Positions 1 to 58,632 of a stretch of DNA of 64,000 nt are shown one piece after another. A program made the position numbers and the translations under genes. The notes beneath the pieces are model-generated. The model was not told the origin of the DNA. It was given only the letters and a program-made list of their open reading frames with translations, and did no database searches. Positions within the stretch are counted from its first letter, which is position 1. Every line of letters starts with the position of its first letter. Origin of the DNA: Octopus sinensis (taxonomy: Eukaryota); NCBI RefSeq assembly GCF_006345805.1, contig NC_043026.1, positions 6,820,001-6,884,000 on the forward strand, given 5' to 3'.

Positions 1-71
1 CAATGACGACGCATGAGGTTAAAGCATGGTTGAAAAATGCTGTGGTAAAGACTGAGAGTATTGTAATCAAC
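1..71 (+). CDS. Putative exon of an unidentified plus-strand gene nested in a talin intron (5' end off-window)
   Basis: Open frame MTTHEVKAWLKNAVVKTESIVIN ending in phase 0 at donor AAC|gtaaga. Confidence 0.5.
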
Positions 72-389
72 GTAAGAACGGGATTGGGTTAAAAGTCGCA
101 ATAAGTAATTCATTAAAACACAGAAGATAGATGATTGGTGAAGAACGGAGAGAACCCTAGGGTATATAATTGAATTAAAAAAAAGCATGGGGGACACAGA
201 GAGCTGTGATAAATAAATAAATGAACAATAAATAAAAGAACATTCTGTCTGTGACTGAATTCCACCCTATGTGGAAATGAATAAAAATCAATCAATCAAT
301 CATTGATTAAACAGAGATCAGTACTCTACTGTTTTGCTGAAATGCAAAGATTCCATGCTAACATCATGCAAATTTTTTTAACTTTGCAG

Positions 390-472
390 ATCTGGATAAC
401 CCATGCTGACATCAGACAGGTAATAGAGAGTGCAAATGCAGACACACAAAACATATTCTACAAACGCCACAG
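390..472 (+). CDS. Putative exon of the nested plus-strand gene
   Basis: Acceptor ttttttaactttgcag; the only open frame is phase 0: IWITHADIRQVIESANADTQNIFYKRH(R); donor AG|gtatgc (phase 2); alternative donor CAG|gtaata at 419. Confidence 0.55.
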
Positions 473-572
473 GTATGCATTTGTTTGCAAGATTTCTTGA
501 TGATCATCGTTGGCAAAATGACCCTCCCTAGATACTGTATGTGTGTGTGTGTGTGTGGTGTGTGTGTGTGTG

Positions 573-661
<89 letters not shown>

Positions 662-1300
662 ATTTCCAATGACTGACACAAAACACCACTGCATGCTTTG
701 AAACTTTAAGTACCAAGGAATTTGAATGAAACTGTTTTGATCCATATATGTGTGTGTATGTATGTAAATATATATATATGTACATACATACATATATCTA
801 CATACACACATATGCATCTCTCTATCTATGCATACATGTCTATATACACACACATACATGCAAATTCAGTTGATATGCTTGAAACTGCTACTCAGTTTTT
901 CTCATTCACGTCTCATCCAACAACATAATTTATTCCAGATAAAAACCACCAATAATTTGATCGAGAATGAAATTTGTTGCCTGGTGACAAAAAAATAAAT
1001 AAATAAACAAACATTAGCTAAATCCTGATTAGCAAAACAAACTGTATCAACTTAGTGCCTTGAATAACTATAACTATACTCTAAAGTATGAATTGAGTAC
1101 TTTTTCTCTTTGCTGTTGAAAACATTATAAATACAAACAAGATATATATATATATATAATTGATTGCATATATACAGTGTTATGTGTTTTGCTTATATAC
1201 TGAATTTGCTGTGAAATAGCACCTGGAAAAGCTCCCAGCACAAAACTGGGTGCTAAAGAACACCTGGGAGTGACAGACCAGGTGAGACACCTCATTACAG

Positions 1301-1400
1301 AATCACAGAGAACCCTGGATACCGATATTTTGCCAATATTGAGGCTTATCAATACCGTGTACTCGGATCATCTCAAAAATGGATTCTACCTGGTCTATGA
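1301..1400 (+). CDS. Putative terminal coding exon of the nested plus-strand gene
   Basis: Acceptor ctcattacag, phase 2: ITENPGYRYFANIEAYQYRVLGSSQKWILPGL-TGA; AATAAA at 1468-1473; acceptor choice ambiguous (1258/1270/1276 also in phase). Confidence 0.5.
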
Positions 1401-1467
1401 CTTATATGCAAACAGATTAAAAACCATTTGCTGAGGTGTAGCAATTGTGAAAAGAAACTGAATTTCA

Positions 1468-1473
1468 AATAAA
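1468..1473 (+). promoter_or_regulatory. Candidate polyadenylation signal of the nested plus-strand gene
   Basis: AATAAA about 68 nt after the predicted stop; AT-rich genome makes chance occurrence possible. Confidence 0.35.
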
Positions 1474-1568
1474 AAGCAGGTCTAGTAACAAATATTATCG
1501 GTCACACACACACACTATGCGTTTTCTATGCCATATGTATATTCATTCTCTCTCTCTCTCTCTCTCTC

Positions 1569-1670
<102 letters not shown>

Positions 1671-1680
1671 TATATACTTT

Positions 1681-1854
1681 TTTAAAGCAGCAGAAAATTC
1701 AACAAAATCTGTTACTCTGAGTTTCACGTTGCCGTTCATCGGACAGTTTTTGCTAGAATGGAACCGATCGGTTCCAATCTAGCAAAAACTGTCCGATGAA
1801 CGGCAACAGGTAACTCAGAGTAACAGGTTTTGTTGATTTTTCTGCTGCTTTAAA
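1681..1854. repeat. Near-perfect palindrome, about 87-bp arms
   Basis: Centre GGAACCGA|TCGGTTCC at 1767/1768; a few mismatches. Confidence 0.88.
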
Positions 1855-1928
1855 TAAAGAATATTACTCTACCACTGGTATTTGAGTACTCTTTTTCCAC
1901 CTTGTTTCACATTTATGTGTTTACTCCG

Positions 1929-1980
<52 letters not shown>

Positions 1981-2280
1981 TATATTTTGTGAAATTTGAT
2001 TTAGTATTTCTAAATTGAATTTTTCCCTGTAAGTTAGGAATAGTATTCCCTCAAATTATTATTATTACATATTTATTATATTCATTACATATGCCCTTTA
2101 CATACATACATACATATATATACATACATGTTATATATATATTACATATGTTTTATGTAAATATACATACACACAATATATTACATATATCATATAATAT
2201 ATATATATATATATGTATACACGTTTATTATATATTACACATACACACATGTTCATGCATGGATGTATTTTATATATATA

Positions 2281-2327
<47 letters not shown>

Positions 2328-2771
2328 AAATATTCATATTTTTGGTGGAGGGTAGTGGTCATACTGGAGCACAGCTTCCGTTCCATTATGGCTTCCCTTT
2401 TTTACAATACTGACAGAAAATCTCATGATGCAAGAGTGCATACAAAAAGGGGACAAAAAAGGGGGCCAGAAGAGGTAAATTGAGGAAAATGTGGGGGCAA
2501 TGCATCTTCCTTAAAACTTTCATCTTTTTCTTCACAATAGAGAGAGAGAGGGAGAAAGAGAAGGAGTTCAAAGACAGACTGCAAGACATCAGGATGACAA
2601 ACATTATTATCGTTATTATTGTTATTTATTAATTACTTTTAGTTGGTTTTTTCTCCATTTTTTTGTTTCATTTTAAATCCAACAAGCATTATTAAATATA
2701 ATTAATATTAAGAAAAACATTTCCATATTGTTTTTCAAGGCATATATACACATTTATACTATATATATATA

Positions 2772-2806
<35 letters not shown>

Positions 2807-2836
2807 CCACACACACAATACATACATTTATATATA

Positions 2837-2884
<48 letters not shown>

Positions 2885-3696
2885 ATCACACACACACACA
2901 CACACACATATATACATATATACTCAAATATATGTATATATACTTGTATACAACATTATATACTCAAGCATACAAGAAAGAAAGAAAGAGGTGTATATAT
3001 AAATAGCACGAGTCGGAGAAAGACAGAGGTGTAGGTGGTGGACGACATGGAGGTGAGGGTGAAGGTGGTGGGCAGTGATGGTGGCGGTAGGAGGAGACAC
3101 ACATGTAAGAGGAGTAAGTGAACAATGCAGAGAGTGACAAACGGAAGTTCTGGTAGGGGTGGGAGGGAGAAAGAAAGAGGGAGGGAGGGAGGAACAAGGA
3201 GGGAGCGAGAGGGGAGGAGGGAGGTGGTTTATTAAAAAAAGAAAGAAAAAAAAAGAAACAAACAAAACTGAAACTAAACTAATAAAAACAAAACAAATAT
3301 AAATTAGGAACTCCAAACAAGGAAAATATATATATACATTGATTACGGGCAAACAAGGCAACCAATGGTTTCACGTAAAGAGATCTACACAATTGTTGAA
3401 GCATGCCTCATGGGAGTGTTGGTACACATCACCATTTAGGATCAGAATATTAGTGTGTATTTATGTATGTATGTATGCATATATATATATATACATATAT
3501 ACATGGCTATATCTAAATATCTACCTATCTACTTAGCTACCTACCTATCTATATACCATCATCATTATCATCATGAACATTGTAATCACCATCATCACCA
3601 ACACAATCTCTTGTAAATAGAGCACAAGGCCAGAAATTTTAGGGGAAAGGGGTCAGTCGATTATATTGACCCCATGTGCTTGACTGTCACTCTACA

Positions 3697-4152
3697 GTAA
3701 ATATTCTGCTCAATACCACAGATTTGCTTGTCAGTTGTTTGACCTCAACCAGTTGAGCATGTCCCTTAGTGGCTGACGATATGTGCATCTCTGATCACGA
3801 GCAGAAATAGTGGGGGAGCATCATAGCCATGTTTTGAGAAGAGTTCTTTGGGGGTTTGGATAATTCACCTTTAGAAACATGGGTGTTTTGTTCAACAACC
3901 TTAAACAACCCTTATTCAGGGACCTTTTGAGCGGGATGGGTTACTCGACCTGAAGAAAATTCAAACTGGGCCCCATCTGCAAGGTCATGCGCTGTTGGTA
4001 TGCGATCACCATGTCGTGCACATGTGGTTGTAATGCATGTGCCTAGTGTGCCCATATCAGATGGGTAGTCATGATGGGTATATTGGGCTTCGAATAATTG
4101 TACCCCAGTGTCACTTTGATGGCATATGCTGCTCTCTCACTCAATAATAATA
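3697..4152 (+). mobile_element. Interspersed repeat family E with (AAT)n tail; second copy 36270-36725
   Basis: About 450 bp closely similar to 36270-36725; retroposon-like tail. Confidence 0.7.
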
Positions 4153-4610
4153 ATGTATACAGGGAGTTTTTTTGCCCTAGGTGTTGGGAAGACACTTGGC
4201 AAGGAATGGAAACAAAACTGAAAGAAGACAATAATAATAATTCCAAACAAAACTAATTACAAAATTCCACACAAAAATGTTGATAATGACAATGGTGATG
4301 ATGAAAAACAAAACTCAACAACCAGTGATGTCAAAAGCAATAATTATAACCATGTGCTTAGTACAGCATTTACAATGGCAAGAGGGAAGGTGGGAGAGGA
4401 GGGAATGACTGGCAGCAGTAATACTAATAATAAAAAAAAACAACCGAAAATAAGTAAACAAACAAAAAGGAAGAGATAAAACAGGAATGGAGAAAGGAAG
4501 GAAAGAAGGCACAAAGACGGGAGGGGTAAAAAAAGGGAGGAGAGAGAACTGAAGTAGAGGAGGACAAAAGAGAGGTAGAGAGAGAGAGAGAGAGAGAGAT
4601 GAAATCTTAC

Positions 4611-4640
4611 CATGGCACGGCTGTTCCAGGAAGCGTAATA
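4611..4640 (-). CDS. TLN1: Candidate 30-nt alternative microexon of talin (YYASWNSRAM) at R7-R8 junction
   Basis: Acceptor cttcttaattcttctcttaag, exon TATTACGCTTCCTGGAACAGCCGTGCCATG, donor gtaaga; phase 0/0, no stop; unique complex sequence amid simple repeats. Confidence 0.75.
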
Positions 4641-5850
4641 CTTAAGAGAAGAATTAAGAAGTTTAATTAGAAGTTAGAGACTGCGAGGATTAAGATGACA
4701 GGGAACGGAACAGGACGAAACCGGTTGACTGACATTGACGTACAGGTTATATATATACACACACACATATATTACTACACATACAGAGATATAGGCACAA
4801 TTATACAAATACATAGACACACATATGTATACATATATATACAAACACACATATATTACTACACATACAGAGATATAGGCACAATTATACACATACATAG
4901 ACACACATATGTATACATATATATACAAACACATATACATAGAAATATATGTATATACATATACATACATATTTATTTATCGACACATAACTAGATATAC
5001 ATGTACACATATGCATAACTTTACATAATGTACAAATGTAACATCCATATAGACATATATACACATATGTATACATATACACACATGGTATACATATACA
5101 ATGACTTATTCCACAAATACATACATTACAAGAGAAATGGGTCGCTGGATTAAAACCCCTGCAAGCAGCACTTTAGCATAGCTGACTGCAAGCTTGGCAG
5201 AGTTTGTTTTATGTGTGTGTGTGTGTGTGTGTGTGTGTGGATCCTTGTCTTGTAAACAAGCATAAACGATATTCAAGTGGTGCTGTTTGTTTGCAGTCTT
5301 CTGCGTAAACATGTCCAGGCATTCAGCTGTTTAAGGCTGAAGGAATTGACGGCAATATTACCTGGCTTGGAAACAGGTGGCAGTTGGTGGTAGCAAGGGC
5401 ATCCAACATTATTGAACACGCACACTGGTAAAATTTCCACTTATTTCTTAATTTTATTTTCCTAAAATTTTTGTTGCATCTTGCAACTTTTTCAATAGTT
5501 TTGACTGTCCATTATTTACACTGTGTTCCCTTTTGTTTGTTTGTGCGCATGTGTGTGCCTATGCATGCATGTATGTAAGTGTGTGTGTAAGCATATGTAT
5601 CTATGTATGTGCATCTGTATGTATGTATTCTGCATATCCATGTGCTTGCATATCCATGTTTGTGTTTTTTATGTGTGTGTGTGTATGTATGCACCTCAGT
5701 CTCCTTGTGTGTGGATGTCTGAGTGTGTGTGTGTGTGTGTGTGCGCATGTGTGTGTTATGCAACTATGTACCGTGTTTGTATGTATGGATGTGCATCTCT
5801 ATATGTGTGGACACGTATCTCCATATGTGTCCTTGTGTGGAGTAAAGTGT

Positions 5851-6042
5851 GTGTGTGTGTATATATGGTCATGTGTGTCAGTCTCCATTTGCATATGTGT
5901 GATTGTCTGTTCTCATAACCTATGTACCTATCCGTCTCTATGTTGATCAACATAGAGACGGATAGGTACATAGGTTATGAGAACAGACAATCACACATAT
6001 GCAAATGGAGACTGACACACATGACCATATATACACACACAC
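5851..6042. repeat. Perfect spacer-less palindrome, about 96-bp arms
   Basis: Centre TGTTGA|TCAACA at 5946/5947; arms match base for base on reading. Confidence 0.9.
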
Positions 6043-6045
6043 TTC

Positions 6046-6078
<33 letters not shown>

Positions 6079-6726
6079 TCAAATAATAATAATAATAATA
6101 ATAATGGACTAGCCCGTTCTTAGACAATGTTTGAGGGTTTAACAATTTCTCACCAAACAACCACACAGAAGATGATTTGTTTATAGTGATCAAACGTTTG
6201 TGTAGACATAAGCTCATTCCTTCCATCAGATTGACATTACCTGTACAGGTGCAACTGGGTGCCACATGTCAGGTGTCAAAATGATCGCAGAGCAAAATGA
6301 AATGAAGTGCTTTGCTCAAGAACACAACGCAATGCCCGGTCTAGGAATCGAACCCTCGATCTCGCGATCATGAGTGCAACACCCTAACCACTAAACCAAA
6401 TGTGCACATGTATTTTCATACCTACCCAAAGGCTGGAAGAACGGACGTGTAATGGAATCGGAACTTCAGAGCCAACAACAAAAACAACACAAATATATAA
6501 AACAACAAAAACAACCACAACAACGAAAACATCAACCCCCGCCCCCCAACACACACACTTCTAACCCCTCAGCAAATAAAACAAAAAAAAAAAAGGAAAA
6601 GCAAAAAAAAAAAAAACATTAGACACTCTTGTATTGCCAATATTAATATTATTCCAGTTTAATTAAATATTTAATTAATGGATTAATGAATTAATTATGC
6701 AGGAAACTGTAAAAGACGAGTCTTAC

Positions 6727-6870
6727 CTCTGAGTGGGATCTTGCTGGATAAGTGAGGTTTTGACACGCTGTCTGGATCGCTTGGTTCGCTCGAGCGAACT
6801 GGGATTGGTCAACAAGACCAGCGTGTCCAGGCTCAGAGGCCGGGTCAGCGATACCAACCAAGTAGGCAGA
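6727..6870 (-). CDS. TLN1: Talin exon (R7, ends at R7-R8 linker)
   Basis: [48 protein letters not shown]; ctctag/gtaaga. Confidence 0.97.
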
Positions 6871-7833
6871 CTAGAGAGAAGAAAAACAGAAAGGTAATAA
6901 TTATAAAAAAAAAAAAATAATAATAAACATTGTGTACAGTGCTCAGGTGCACTACAACTCATCTAAAGTGTATATATAATCAGGTGTAGTTTCGGCGGAT
7001 TTCGGAAAGCATGAGGGACTTAAAGGATGCAGTGTCATGGCAGTCAACAACTGATGCAGGCAGTTTATTCCATGCTTCAGCAACTCTGAGCGTGAAAAAA
7101 TGTCTCCGAAAGTCATGGGAGCTGTATTGTTTTCTGACTTTGTAGGCATGTCCACGTGTGTTAGACACATGGAGATCAAAAAGGTGTTCAGTGTTGTTGT
7201 TGGTGAGGTGGTTGATAACTTTGTGGGTGTTTACCAAGTCTGTCGCCAGATGCCGGAGCTTCAGTGAATCCATGCCCAGGGATGTAGCCCAGTTACGTAG
7301 CTTTAACTCTCAAAAGTTAACTTGGTATTCGGTTACGAATAAATGAAAAGAATCCAAAGACTTCTTTCTTACCTGAGCAGCAGCTTCAGTCAGGCCATTA
7401 ATGGATGAGGAGAAGTTTCTGACGGCCTCGCAGAACCCATCCGTGTCAGCTTTCTTGGCATCATTTGATATTCCTGTCATGGCATCGCCAAGAGACTGCA
7501 GATTGGATGCGAGAGAGAGAAACAGAGATGAGACGAGGAATAAGGGAATGTAGTAAAGAACACACACACACACACACACATACATGAGGGGTTGGTGAAA
7601 GGTTCCTGGTCTTGGGTAAAAGAAAAAAGCAGGAGGATCAGTTAATTATGATTCTATTCAACATATTCCCTTCTCAGATCCACACACTTATTGCAGGGGA
7701 GGTCCTTCAGTTTTTCTAAGCCCTGTAAAAGAACCCAAGAACTTGGGCCTCCAACCAGGCCATTTGTGATACCCTTAAAACCAGGAACCTTTCAGCACCT
7801 TCATGTGTGTGTACGAGTATGAGTGTGTGTGTG

Positions 7834-20613: not shown

Positions 20614-21701
20614 TCCTCCTAGCATTGCTTGACAACCAATGCTGGTGTGTTTACGTCACCGTCACTTAGCGGTTTGGCAAAAGAGATCGATAGAATAAGT
20701 ACTGGGCTTACAAAGAATAAGTCTCGGAGCTGATTTGCTCCACTAAAGGCAGTGCTCCAGCATGGCTGCAGTTAAATGACTGAAACAAGTAAAAGAGTAA
20801 AGAGAAAGAGCATAGAAATTAAAAATTGATTGGATCATCCCCAGTATGCAACTGGTAGTTAATTTATCGACCCCGAAAGGTCAAAAGAAAAATTCGACCT
20901 TAGTGGAATTTGAACTCAGAACATAAAGACAGATGAAATATTGCTAAGCATTTCGCCCGGCGTGCTAACGTTTCTGCCAGCTCGCTGCCTTACACACATA
21001 TATATATAATGGTAATACAGCAGGAGAAAAAGGAAAAAAATTTAATTCTAGATGTTTACAGCTGTTTCATAATTTACTTTCAGTTACAGCATCCTAAATT
21101 TAAATGAGAGCCAGATTCCTAGCTGGAGAACTTACCAAGACTTCTGTTTGATTTTCTGAATCCCTTTTTCTATTCTGTGTGTGTGTGTGTGTGTAGTTCT
21201 GGTCAAAAGTTTGGAACTTATTTTTGGATATGTGACGTGCTAGCTTCTATTTATTAAAAGCAAGCAATTTGGTCTAGAACTAGATTTTTGATTTTGCCTA
21301 TTTTTTTCAAGATATTGAAACATTGGGTCAGTAATTAAGTAAGTATATCTCTATGTTGTGTGTATTTGAATCAAATTGTACTTGGGCAGAACAATTTCAA
21401 TTTTCAAAAAATGTTAAAGTCTTTAGGTCACAACTGTGTGTGTGTAAATATATATATGCCGGTGGCACGTAAAAACACCATCCGTTCGTGGCCGTTTGCC
21501 AGCTCTGTCTGGCACCTGTGCAGGTGGCATGTAAAAAGCACCCACTACACTCATGGAGTAGTTAGTGTTAGGAAGGGCATCCAGCCGTAGAAACACTGCC
21601 AAATCTGACTGGGCCTGATGAAGCCTTCCGGCTTCACAGACCCCAGTTAAACCGTCCAACCCATGCTAGCATGGAAAACGGATGCTAAATGATGATGATG
21701 A

Positions 21702-44201: not shown

Positions 44202-47200
44202 ATATACTCTTTACTCTTTTACTTGTTTCAGTCATTTGACTGCGGCCATGCTGGAGCACCGCCTTTAATCGAGCAACTCAACCCCGGGACTTATTCTTTG
44301 TAAGCCCAGTACTTATTCTATCGGTCTCTTTTGCCGAACTGCTAAGTGACGGGGACGTAAACACACCAGCATCGGTTGTCAAGCAATGCTAGAGGGACAC
44401 ACACAAACACACACACGGATATATATATATATTTGCACACAGATATGTACATACATATACACATATATATATACACATATATATACACAATTACATATAT
44501 ACACATTCATATACAAATGTGTACACACACATATGCATACTTATAGACACACACACATATATGCATACATATACTCACACATAATGCATTCTTATATATA
44601 CACACACACACACATAGAGCTGTGTTAATGCACAAGAAATACGATGATGAGAGTACTCAATACATGCACCTGCCAGGTGGGTGTGGGTACAGGGTGGGTC
44701 CTTTCAATGGGAAATTGTCGAGGAATTCGGTTCGAAGTCTTGGGTGAAGACTTAAGATTTCTGAGACGTTCTTTGTGCTGTCAGATGATGACTTTCGCAC
44801 TGGGGAACCTCTTGAAAGACGGCTTTGTGCGAGGGTCGGTGGGGGGGGGGCATCGAGGAACACAGCCTCCGTTTATTATGGTTGAGCAAATAGGATCTTT
44901 TGTACCATTTAAGCATGTGTGTGTGTGTGCATGGTCTGTCTGTGTGTGCATGGTCTGTCTGTGTGTCCAGGACAGAGAAAGTGTGTATTTGAGAGAGAGT
45001 GAGAGAAATGTATATATGTATATTTATGTGTGTGTATATGTATAGTTGTGTGGTAAGAAGCTTGCTTCCCAACCACATGGTTCTGGGATCAATCCCACTC
45101 TGTGGTAACTTGGGCAAGTGTTTTGCATTATAGCCTTGGGCCAACCAAAGTCTTGTGGCTGAATTTGGCAGACGGAAACTAAAAGAAGCCTATATATATA
45201 TATATATATCATCATCATTTAACGTCCGTTCTCCATGCTAGCATGGGTATATATATATATATATATGCATATATTTGTGTGTCTGTGTTTGCCCCCTACA
45301 CCATCGCTTGACAACCGATGCTGGTGTGTTTACGTCCCCATAACTTAGCTGCTTGGCAAAAGGAGACTGATAGAATAAGTACTAGGCTTACAAAGACTAA
45401 GTCCTGGGTCGATTTCCTCGACTAAAGGCAGTGCTTCATCATGGCCACAGTCAAATGACAAACAAGTAAAAGAATAAAAGAATATATATATATATATATA
45501 TACGTTAGAGAGAGAAAGAGAAAGGGAGAGAGGTGGTTCAAGGCAGATTTGGCTGCTATTTCTACCAAGTCCGATTACCATCTAGCTGTCTCCTTAGTGA
45601 GCTCTGGTGGTGCTGAGATAGTGATGATGATGATGATGATGATGATGATGGGGTTGGTAGCAGCACAAATGGAGCTAGTAGTAGTAGCAGCATTACAGAT
45701 GTCTCTGTTCTCACTAGTATGCAGCAAGAAGAGGAAGGGGAGGAGGAGGAATAGAGGGGTGTGAGGATGTTGGTGGTGGTGGTGGTGGTGGAGGAGTACT
45801 AAATAGTAAACTAATTGTTCTTTGGAGCCGTTCAGGAAGTTGAGTGGTGCCACACCAAGGAGCCCCGGGGTAGGGAACTTTTTCTATAGGCGCTTGTCTG
45901 TCTGTCTGTCGCTAGTTCCTTCTTTAAAACAGCTGCTGCTGTTGTTGTTGTTGTTTAACCACAGGTCAGTCCTGGTCCATCAAACCATCTGTGTTTCGGC
46001 CAGGAACATCCCACATTTTATTCAGGCATAATCTACCTAGGACTACATCATCTAATGTGTCCTTCTTTCCTTGTTTAATCTCAGGTCGGTCTTGATCCAG
46101 GAAACCTATGATCAAAAGCATTCCAGCCATGACCATCCCATCTTGTGCTTAGATATAATACATGTAGGAATACATTATCTAATGTGCCCACTTTATACAC
46201 ATACACACACATATATATAGATATACACATATATACACACACACAGATATATACACATACATACACACTTACATATATATATACACATACATACACACTC
46301 ACATATAGATATACACACACACACACGCACTTGTCCCAGGACTTATTTGTTGTAAGTTTAGTATTTATTCTATTGGTCTCTTTTGCCGAACTGCTAAGTT
46401 ATGGGGGACGTAAACATACCAACATCAGTTGTCAACTGAAGGTAGTGGGGACAAACACCCACACACATAAATGTGTGTATGTGTATGAATATATATATAT
46501 ATATATATATAGACATGCAACGGGCTTCTTTTCAGTTTCTGCCTACCAAATCCACTCACAAGGCTTTGGTTAGCCTGAGGCCATAGTAAAAGACACTTTA
46601 CTCAAGGTGTCAAAGTACAGTGGGACTGAACCTGGAACCGTGTGGTCAGAAAACAAGCTTCTTACCACACAGCCATTCACGTGCCTAACTTTTCAAGACA
46701 GACATTTCTTAATTTCGAAATTGGAAATTCACCTCTCACACACACACACACACATATACACATATACATACACGTGTGTGATGGTCTTCTTAAAGTCCCC
46801 GGCTACCAAATGTGTTCGCAAAAAGATTTGGTGAAGCCAGGGCTATTGTAGAAGACACCCATGGAAGAACAAAAGGTGAATGTTAAAATGACGATGACCT
46901 GACCGTGATGATGGCAAAAGATGCTGGGTGAACGGAATTTAATGAAAGACAGAAGAATGCAGAGAAATTAAGCCAAACAATTAGGTCGTTCTTGATGGTA
47001 ACGATAGCTCCAATAAATAACGAGTCTGTAATGAAATGGTGTGCATATATGTATATAATATGTCTGAATATATATACATATATATGTATATAATATGTGT
47101 GAATGAGTGTGAGCACACACACACATATATATATATATATACATAATTATATATAGAAATATACAGACATACATTTTAACAAAGACTGTATATGTCTGTC

Positions 47201-50200: not shown

Positions 50201-51922
50201 GTGAGATAAAGGAGAGGTGAACAGAGCTGTGTATGGAGGAAGGAGTGGAATGATACGGGTGAGTTGGTGAGTTGGACTGCAGGAGCATTTGGTGGGGAAA
50301 GAGTAGCAGGGTGCATGACGAGATGTACTTAGATTCATTGGGGTGGGATGTGGCGAATGGATGACATAATCTCAGACACAAACACTGTCTGGAATAATAA
50401 AAATGGTACTCACTCTAAGAAGCCAGGTTTGTGTTTACTTTCTACATAATTACCAAACTGGATCTGACATTGAAGGCCTGCAAACTGTAGGGCTTCTGTT
50501 TGTGTGACTGGGTGGGTTCCATCTATGATACCATCACGGCACTGAAACACAAATATATATACACATATATATATATATATACATATATATACACATCACT
50601 ATATAAAAAAAAAAAGGTTTAGTTTGATTATTGCCAATTCTTTCAACAAGAGAATTTTTTTTCTGCAGACTAACTTTATTATTTTTGTGGTAAGTAGCTT
50701 GCTAACCAACCACATGGTTCCGGGTTCAGTCCCACTGCGTGGCACCATGGGCAAGTGTCTTCTACTATAGCCTCGGGCCGACCAATGCCTTGTGAGTGGA
50801 TTTGGTAGACGGAAACTGAAAGAAGCCCGTCGTATATATATGTATGTATATATATATATATATATATAATATATATATATAATATATATATATATAATAT
50901 ATATATATATATATGTGTGGTGTGTATGTGTGTGTGTGTGTATGTCTGTGTGTCTGTGTTTGTCCCCCCAACATTGCTTGACAACCGATGCTGGTGTGTT
51001 TACGTCCCCGTTACTTAGCGGTTCAGCAAAAGAGACCGATAGAATAAGTACTGGGCTTACAAAAGAATAAGTCCCGGGGTCGAGTTGCTCGATTAAAGGC
51101 GGTGCTCCAGCATGGCCACAGTCAAATGACTGAAACAAGTAAAAGAATAAAAAGAGTAAAAGAGTATAGTATTTCTGAACACAACCATCGACAACCATAA
51201 TAATATGTATATCATATAACATCGTTGTTTAACACTGTCCTGCCATGGTGGAATGGGTTGGATGGTTTGGCAGGAACTGGAAAGCCAGAAGACTTGATGC
51301 AAGCTCTACCGCCTTGTCTTGGCATGGTTTCCTATGGCTGGATGCCCTTCCTAATGCCAACCACTTTACAGAGTGTGCTGGGTGCATTCTACATGGCACC
51401 AACAGCAGTGAGGTTCCCAAGTAACTTGCAAGGTGAGGCCCCTCAACTGAAGCTTGGAGTAAGATTGAGGGAGATGGCTTTGTACCAGTTGACGAGGAGT
51501 CAGAGTATGAATAGAGTGACAGAAGCAGGGGCCTTGCAGTGGGAGACCCCTAACACCTGTATGCACACACAAAGAATCCTGCCTCACCAATGTATAAATG
51601 GTACTGCATCCCCCTACCCCCAATTCACACATGACACCCAGTCAACAACAGAGGTAACCAATGTGAGTTAAGACCACCAGACCAGTGCTGCCACCTACCT
51701 GCACATACAGCAACTGCAGCTGTACTGGATCCCGTGCATCAACGTTTTGATCGGAGAAGAAAAACTTCCGTCGAAGAAGCAAGATTTCATTGTGTTCGAT
51801 TCCTTGTTCTCTCAATGTCTTGGAATGGTCCAACCAATTTACTGAAAATACACCAATTACATACATTCAATACACATTCTATACATACATTCATACATAC
51901 ATACACACATACGCACACACAT

Positions 51923-58445: not shown

Positions 58446-58632
58446 TTGTCCCCCTAGCATTGCTTGACAACCGATGCTGGTGTGTTTACGTCCCCGTCAC
58501 TTAGCGGTTTGGCAAAAGAGACCGATAGAATAAGTACTGGGCTTACAAAGAATAAGTCCCGGGATCGATTTGCTCGACTAAAGGCGGTGCTCCAGCATGG
58601 CCGTAGTCAAATGACTGAAACAAGTAAAAGAG
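58224..58632 (+). mobile_element. SINE family A copy
   Basis: Same sequence as 18316-18727. Confidence 0.85.

Follow-up and report, generated by a model that had tools for sequence, protein, structure and literature searches.

An apparently unannotated microexon in the R8 region of an octopus talin gene and its orthologues in other invertebrates

Talin-1 in animals was long thought to exist as a single isoform, until exon 17b of TLN1 was described in 2023 (Gallego-Paez et al., PMC9997659). Tissue-related alternative splicing of talin coding exons is also known from Tln2, where exons 43/44 can be skipped and an exon 54b has been described (Debrand et al. 2009, PMC2702505). Our literature search returned only these exon 17b and Tln2 events, and no paper linking talin and microexons. 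Here we analyze a 30-nucleotide (nt), in-frame microexon encoding YYASWNSRAM at positions 4611 to 4640 on the minus strand of a 64,000-nt stretch of the Octopus sinensis genome (contig NC_043026.1, positions 6,820,001 to 6,884,000; hereafter the window), within a talin gene. The exon is apparently unannotated, and would be a newly recognised conserved coding microexon of talin. We read it as a functional protein-coding cassette that is most likely alternatively included, and we give this reading a probability of roughly 0.7.

Four systems come closest, the fourth of which, the predicted amphioxus isoform X16, is taken up below with its structural model. TLN1 exon 17b is likewise an unannotated, short, in-frame cassette of the talin rod, and it alters the properties of a helical bundle (PMC9997659). 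Exon 17b measures 51 nt (17 residues), sits between exons 17 and 18, is known from human data and has an unrelated sequence, whereas the present exon measures 15 to 30 nt across loci, falls in R8 alpha2 and has so far been seen in invertebrates only. We take exon 17b to belong to the R1-R2 region. The Tln2 events, which are tissue-related, parallel the probable alternative use of the present exon, but they affect other parts of the rod and the C-terminus, and none has been reported at the R8 alpha1/alpha2 junction (PMC2702505). The third system is the set of neural microexons that depend on the eMIC domain of SRRM3/4 or Srrm234 (PMC8797185). They are similarly no longer than 30 nt, in-frame and conserved at the coding level, and are placed in a loop on the surface, or at the end of a helix, in domains that mediate interactions.

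The identity of the host gene as talin, proposed in an earlier note on this DNA that was made from the letters alone, is secure, as the R7R8 structures 4w8p, 2x0c and 6r9t in the PDB were matched at E values of 5e-24 to 2e-22. About two thirds of the gene lie on the minus strand of the window, with exons running from about 52955 down to 6721. The exon before last ahead of the microexon (exon N-1, 7373 to 7495) encodes the R7 helices preceding the R8 insertion; its boundaries read cag/TCT...CAG/gtaaga, it ends in TEAAAQ, and it aligns with talin-1 residues of about 1401 to 1442. Exon N (6727 to 6870) begins SAYLVGIAD and codes for the last part of R7 alpha3, the strand linking R7 to R8, R8 alpha1 and the loop between alpha1 and alpha2, ending in phase 0 at a gtaaga donor. 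The exon boundary is kept in all loci examined. An intron of 2,086 nt (4641 to 6726) then leads to the microexon.

On the minus strand, the microexon reads ag/TATTACGCTTCCTGGAACAGCCGTGCCATG/gtaaga from 4640 to 4611, and its ten codons (TAT TAC GCT TCC TGG AAC AGC CGT GCC ATG) translate to YYASWNSRAM. It is thus no longer than 30 nt, a multiple of three in length and free of stop codons, with canonical AG/GT boundaries. The acceptor reads ttcttaattcttctcttaag up to the exon edge. The pyrimidine-rich tract with its AG (taaacttcttaattcttctcttaag, 4641 to 4665) holds pyrimidines at 16 of the 20 bases before the AG, and two branch-point-like CUAAY motifs lie upstream of it (4666 to 4677), namely CTAAC at 4677 to 4673 (−37) and CTAAT at 4670 to 4666 (−30). 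The 5' splice site gtaaga occupies 4605 to 4610. All of these elements had been described in the earlier note and are borne out on the minus strand. Of the phase 0/0 assigned there, the upstream half can be read in the window from the end of exon N, and the downstream half comes from orthologous loci, in which the next constitutive exon starts in phase 0. That exon (VLSAAT..., R8 alpha2-alpha3) lies outside the window: tblastn of its peptide against the window gave no match. With it off the low end, the downstream intron, whose first part takes up positions 1 to 4604, is at least 4.6 kb long, and the 3' phase is unreadable in the window.

Strong evidence that the exon codes for protein comes from comparison with other talin loci. 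We gathered 70 loci containing exon N and scanned the intron that follows it. In a contig from a related species (L001), where the flanking exons show 77 to 80% DNA identity and exon N shows 92% protein identity to the window, the microexon is found about 2.4 kb after exon N as ag/TATTATGCTTCATGGAATAGCCGAGCTATG/gtaag. Its peptide is identical to that of the window, the five nucleotide differences all being synonymous and at third codon positions. Elsewhere the intron is unalignable between the two, and conservation ends at the ag and gt boundaries; a CTAAC is retained at −29 in L001. By our own estimate, the chance of such a match in 3.4 kb is about 1e-7.

More distant loci carry diverged versions of the same exon. 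Seven more 30-nt orthologues share the pattern YY[ASM][STA]xxxR[AS]x, and among the peptides encoded are YYATESLRAM (L003), YYATGNVRSM (L004 to L006), YYMAESCRSM (L008, Magallana gigas), YYASWVYRSL (L014 and L016), YYSTWMCRSS (L015) and YYSTWTARSM (L034). A shorter form of 15 nt, present in at least 16 loci, follows the pattern [DE]YR[AGS]x and encodes DYRAV (L013 and L020), DYRGT (L007), or EYRAA, EYRAV or EYRSA in about 25 loci, 14 of them with distinct flanks. MAFFT pairs DY-----RAV with YYASWNSRAM, so that a Tyr at position 2 and an Arg third from the end are invariant, the latter encoded by CGT, CGA, CGG or AGG. Donors read gtaag in the 30-nt and 15-nt orthologues except in L008 (gtaggt) and L034 (gtatgt). 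The lengths of the mini-exons found in this intron, 15, 21 and 30 nt, are all multiples of three. The earlier note had named a lack of conservation of the 30-mer and its splice sites in other molluscs, together with an absence of inclusion reads in deep multi-tissue RNA-seq, as grounds for giving the exon up; on conservation, we found the opposite, with orthologues and their splice sites in other invertebrates, including a disrupted copy in Magallana gigas.

We also counted matches to the pattern ag/xY..R[AGSC]x/gt. It occurs 35 times in 143 kb of microexon intron across loci and 4 times in 570 kb of control strands, an enrichment of about 35-fold, and it is present in 34 of the 46 loci having at least 600 nt of this intron. 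Across both strands of the whole window it was found once, at the microexon. Short open frames flanked by AG and GT are common in AT-rich, pyrimidine-rich introns. We nonetheless reject a chance reading frame between a chance AG and a chance GT, which we consider extremely improbable, on the basis of the enrichment and of orthologous exons found at this place in the intron in 10 or more separate lineages. The comparison of sequences across these loci argues that the microexon is real and under coding-level constraint in distant species.

A different explanation would accept the conservation but not the translation: the element could be a conserved non-coding piece of intron that escapes translation altogether and serves as a pseudo-exon or decoy, regulates splicing, or acts as a recursive-splicing site. 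Its location in a long intron would fit such an element, as would the failure of every search to return a protein or transcript containing it. Against this stand the codon pattern of the substitutions (all five synonymous between the window and L001, and the invariant Arg switching between CGN and AGG), lengths that are always multiples of three without a stop, and conservation that halts at the ag and gt. We consider a non-coding element quite improbable on these grounds. The recursive splice site AG/GTAAGT in particular was rejected, as the exons start with TAT, GAG, GAC or ACG and never with GT. Should RNA show no inclusion, the locus would still hold an unusually well-conserved intronic element needing explanation.

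The depth of this conservation can be gauged from protein divergence. Among named proteins, which came from Pecten, Elysia, Plakobranchus, Biomphalaria, Magallana and Branchiostoma, the window talin is nearest to bivalve talin. Over a 179-amino-acid exon of the window, Pecten maximus shows 71% identity and amphioxus 54%, whereas the EYRA-type loci show 50 to 53% and a fish-like talin 40%. As the EYRA-type loci are about as distant as amphioxus, the [DEY]Y...R signature spans deep divergences. Loci in which the intron at this position is very short (48 to 480 nt; arthropod-like, vertebrate-like and one other group) had no mini-exon. The loci with an arthropod-like talin, for instance, have only a 48- to 63-nt intron there, as read from the protein fragment P0048 and the locus L009. 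The suggestion, offered in the earlier note, of a YYASWN-type insert in arthropod talin isoforms found no counterpart, since none of three protein-collection searches returned an insert-carrying protein.

A second small exon was seen in the same intron of one lineage. At L017:11140-11160 and L019:1666-1686, a different conserved 21-nt exon, ag/ACGGAGGAGAGTCTGATGCAT/gtgagt, encodes TEESLMH or TEASLMH and is without the Tyr...Arg signature; exon N in these loci ends in ...ACQNLINPASTQQQ. The microexon intron may therefore be a recurrent site for small cassettes.

Two of the orthologous loci also contained tandem duplications of talin exon pieces. In L005 and L006 (1342-2067), a unit of about 147 bp is repeated at least six times in tandem right after the real exon (994-1185), and each unit comprises the 3' part of a talin exon with its gtaag donor. 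In L007 (12003-12420), the real R8 alpha2-alpha3 exon is closely followed by a tandem series of three partial copies of its 3' end (GKRHFVQS...ANLVKAIK). The oyster locus (L008:20228-24411 of Magallana gigas OY970745.1) appears to be a partial copy of talin that has been disrupted: a 4.1-kb insertion with a poly-A end interrupts exon N, a TAG stop stands in place of the last Gln codon of this exon, and the copy is annotated as 'talin-2-like' proteins of 98 to 132 amino acids, with the microexon-like YYMAESCRSM still kept.

All spliced talins that we recovered, which come from taxa related to the source species, skip the microexon and join ...QQQ straight to VLSAAT. These include three full-length cDNA-like contigs (L030, L064 and L066, with open reading frames of about 2,560 amino acids), the spliced proteins of Pecten and Elysia, and further talins. 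Because every spliced talin found skips it, the microexon is probably an alternative cassette. It is possibly a neural one. One could instead suppose that the exon is constitutive in this lineage and missed by annotation, in which case it would be a fixed, lineage-specific extension of an R8 loop and not a switch. Gene predictors do often miss microexons, the splice sites in the window look strong (16 of 20 pyrimidines, gtaaga), and the evidence for skipping comes from related taxa and not from the source species. We nevertheless find a constitutive exon unlikely, given that the skipping talins include those three full-length contigs, and that long AG-free zones and, in the 15-nt group, conserved flanking intronic elements are typical of regulated exons.

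The surroundings of the exon are informative about how such an alternative cassette might be controlled. A long AG-free zone, UGC near the 3' splice site and CUAAY are features of eMIC-dependent neural microexons, and CUAAY, the Drosophila branch-point consensus, has been reported as strong at eMIC-dependent exons (PMC8797185). The window shares with such exons an AG-free zone of 38 nt, the CTAAC/CTAAT motifs and a UCUC-rich tract (ttcttctctt). Across loci, the median length of the AG-free zone is 45 nt, compared with 23 nt for the neighbouring constitutive exon N (p=0.003, with loci that are not independent of each other). The 15-nt orthologues also resemble eMIC exons in having UGC near the acceptor: each of the 14 EYRA-type loci has one between −9 and −20, L007 has one as well, and so does L015 among the 30-nt loci. 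The window differs from eMIC exons here, as neither it nor L001 has a UGC in −60 to −1, and its acceptor, with a good pyrimidine tract, looks stronger. In the 15-nt group, a conserved UGC at about −13 goes together with a pyrimidine tract that is weak and, past the exon, with a conserved element rich in GU, features likewise described for eMIC-dependent neural microexons (PMC8797185).

In EYRA-type loci (for example L025:3094-3133 and L053:1635-1674), a downstream element gtaagaca...gtcagtctg[ct]ctgtgtg is found alongside a conserved upstream ttgcac(a/g)c, and both are candidate binding sites for splicing regulators. In the window, a (CT)n run begins 13 nt past the donor (4577 to 4598). It could be a site for a pyrimidine-tract protein or a mere microsatellite, and we give it little weight because it is not conserved in L001.

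The position of the insert in the folded protein follows from a gapless alignment in which query residues 3 to 94 correspond to talin-1 residues 1399 to 1490, so that the last residue of exon N is Q1490. The numbering was checked with R1523, K1530, V1540, K1541, I1543 and K1544, which fall where they have been placed previously (PMC4938799), and a mammalian fragment (P0059) was also used. The R7-R8 linker (about 1449 to 1463) is encoded in the middle of exon N, which then goes on to encode R8 alpha1 (1464 to 1481) and a GEPGCT-type loop; a low-confidence single-sequence model starts alpha2 at Q1488. The insert point is thus between the equivalents of Q1490 and V1491. This places the insert within the opening turn of R8 alpha2, at the end of R8 that points away from R7 and about 30 residues past the R7-R8 linker. 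The earlier note had put it exactly at the R7-R8 junction, in the linker, which is not where it lies.

This correction bears on what the insert might do. The first two residues of the next exon are V-L, the Leu being L1492, which forms the LD-recognition box together with V1540, K1541, I1543 and K1544 (PMC4938799); the insert therefore stands two residues ahead of L1492. The invariant Arg sits four residues before L1492 in both the 5- and the 10-residue versions. Since the insert is beside L1492 and not at the linker, an effect on access of LD-motif ligands is likelier than one on the R7/R8 hinge. Retuning of the hinge was rejected on the position of the insert.

An insert of the same length at the same junction is predicted in amphioxus and provides an indication of what R8 can tolerate. 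The talin-1-like isoform X16 of Branchiostoma lanceolatum (XP_066270434.1; P0058 in our set) has a 10-residue insert at the identical junction, SQAQ/VRAGKTSTVT/VLSAAT. The X16 insert differs in being unrelated in sequence, in being without the Tyr...Arg signature and in being known from a predicted isoform only. Since its first residues are Val-Arg, which is what reading through a gtaaga donor would give, it probably reflects an alternative 5' splice site and not a cassette exon. A model of X16 R7R8 made from a small alignment (pLDDT 87.6) has both R7 and R8 intact, with residues 130 to 139 disordered, and superposes on solved R7R8 complexes at TM 0.82 to 0.88. Alpha2 begins, in this model, with the final four residues of the insert.

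By analogy, inclusion of the microexon would add 10 residues (5 in other lineages) between the equivalents of Q1490 and V1491, and the last three to four of them (...RAM or ...RAA) might become a new first turn of alpha2. The invariant Arg would then be placed at i-4 from L1492, a turn of the helix above it and facing the ligand, and the part bearing the Tyr would lengthen the alpha1-alpha2 loop beside the groove. Where the exon is included, R8 could differ in how tightly or how selectively it binds acidic LD-motif helices (RIAM, DLC1, paxillin-type, Caskin-type), and perhaps in its stability as well. We offer this LD-binding mechanism tentatively and would not bet on it at even odds.

The exon could also be included and act outside LD binding. 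The Tyr, which follows D, E or Y, might be a phosphorylation site, or a longer alpha1-alpha2 loop might change the force at which R8 unfolds or the exposure of its vinculin-binding helix. The Tyr is as invariant as the Arg, and acid-Tyr contexts are common kinase targets, which we count in favour of phosphorylation. The solubility of R8 is moreover sensitive to surface mutations (PMC4938799). The spacing of the Arg from L1492, fixed in the 5- and 10-residue versions, points instead to the binding face, and a role outside LD binding seems to us doubtful.

Several points weigh against reading the element as an alternatively included coding cassette that acts on R8. No transcript or protein with the microexon was found in any search, and inclusion is inferred from its conservation. 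The protein searches (a 104-amino-acid query, the junction profiles A1 and A4, and phmmer against 1.84 billion representatives) returned no insert-carrying protein from the three collections, a weak negative given that isoforms are collapsed into clusters there and that invertebrate transcripts are few. The taxonomic depth of the conservation is estimated from protein divergence only, and the oyster, in its disrupted talin copy, is the only named species with a 30-nt orthologue. The intron of the gastropod Elysia has a weak CYRAV candidate with a poor donor (gtttcc) and contains 1.1 kb of assembly gaps. With its good pyrimidine tract and no UGC, the window may be regulated differently from the 15-nt versions. 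An effect on ligand binding, lastly, rests on helical geometry and on the analogy with the amphioxus model. What is directly observed is the sequence itself, the constraint on it at the coding level, the place of the insert in the fold and the occurrence of skipping transcripts; inclusion, tissue specificity and any effect on ligands go beyond these observations by reasoning.

A broader reading is that the 15-nt [DE]YRAx and the 30-nt YYxxxxxRxx forms are one ancient microexon, at least as old as the last ancestor that molluscs share with the other lineages in which it was found. Such an exon would act as a switch, set by splicing, through which the LD-recognition box of R8 gains an Arg and a Tyr, retuning its choice of LD partners (RIAM, DLC1/RhoGAP, paxillin, Caskin) in tissues such as neurons or muscle. 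This is a possibility that we favour less than its denial, though not by so much that we would set it aside. If true, it would represent a regulatory layer of integrin adhesion without a described vertebrate counterpart.

Talin R8 is a hub at which RIAM, DLC1, paxillin, CDK1, Caskin2 and other LD-motif ligands compete, and several of its complexes have been solved. Retuning of this hub would have been tried out by nature if a conserved cassette does edit the first turn of alpha2, two residues away from L1492. It predicts that R7R8 with and without EYRAA or YYASWNSRAM should differ in affinity for LD peptides. Few microexons are known to be conserved between distant invertebrate lineages, and the exon would bring a gene of cytoskeletal adhesion into their number.

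An Rfam scan of the window gave no match. The window has a GC content of 40% and is rich in perfect dinucleotide microsatellites (AT, AC/GT and AG/CT, for example at 4577-4598 and 4770-4950), with runs of at least six units making up 5% of its bases. Inside the intron between exons N-1 and N, an open frame of 109 amino acids lies on the minus strand at 6983-7309; a Pfam search with it gave no match, and we take it to resemble the tail of a retroelement open reading frame. The peptide stretch KHTSIGCQA is encoded at four sites on both strands (about 20626-20652, 44359-44385, 50975-51001 and 58461-58487) and is presumably a dispersed repeat.
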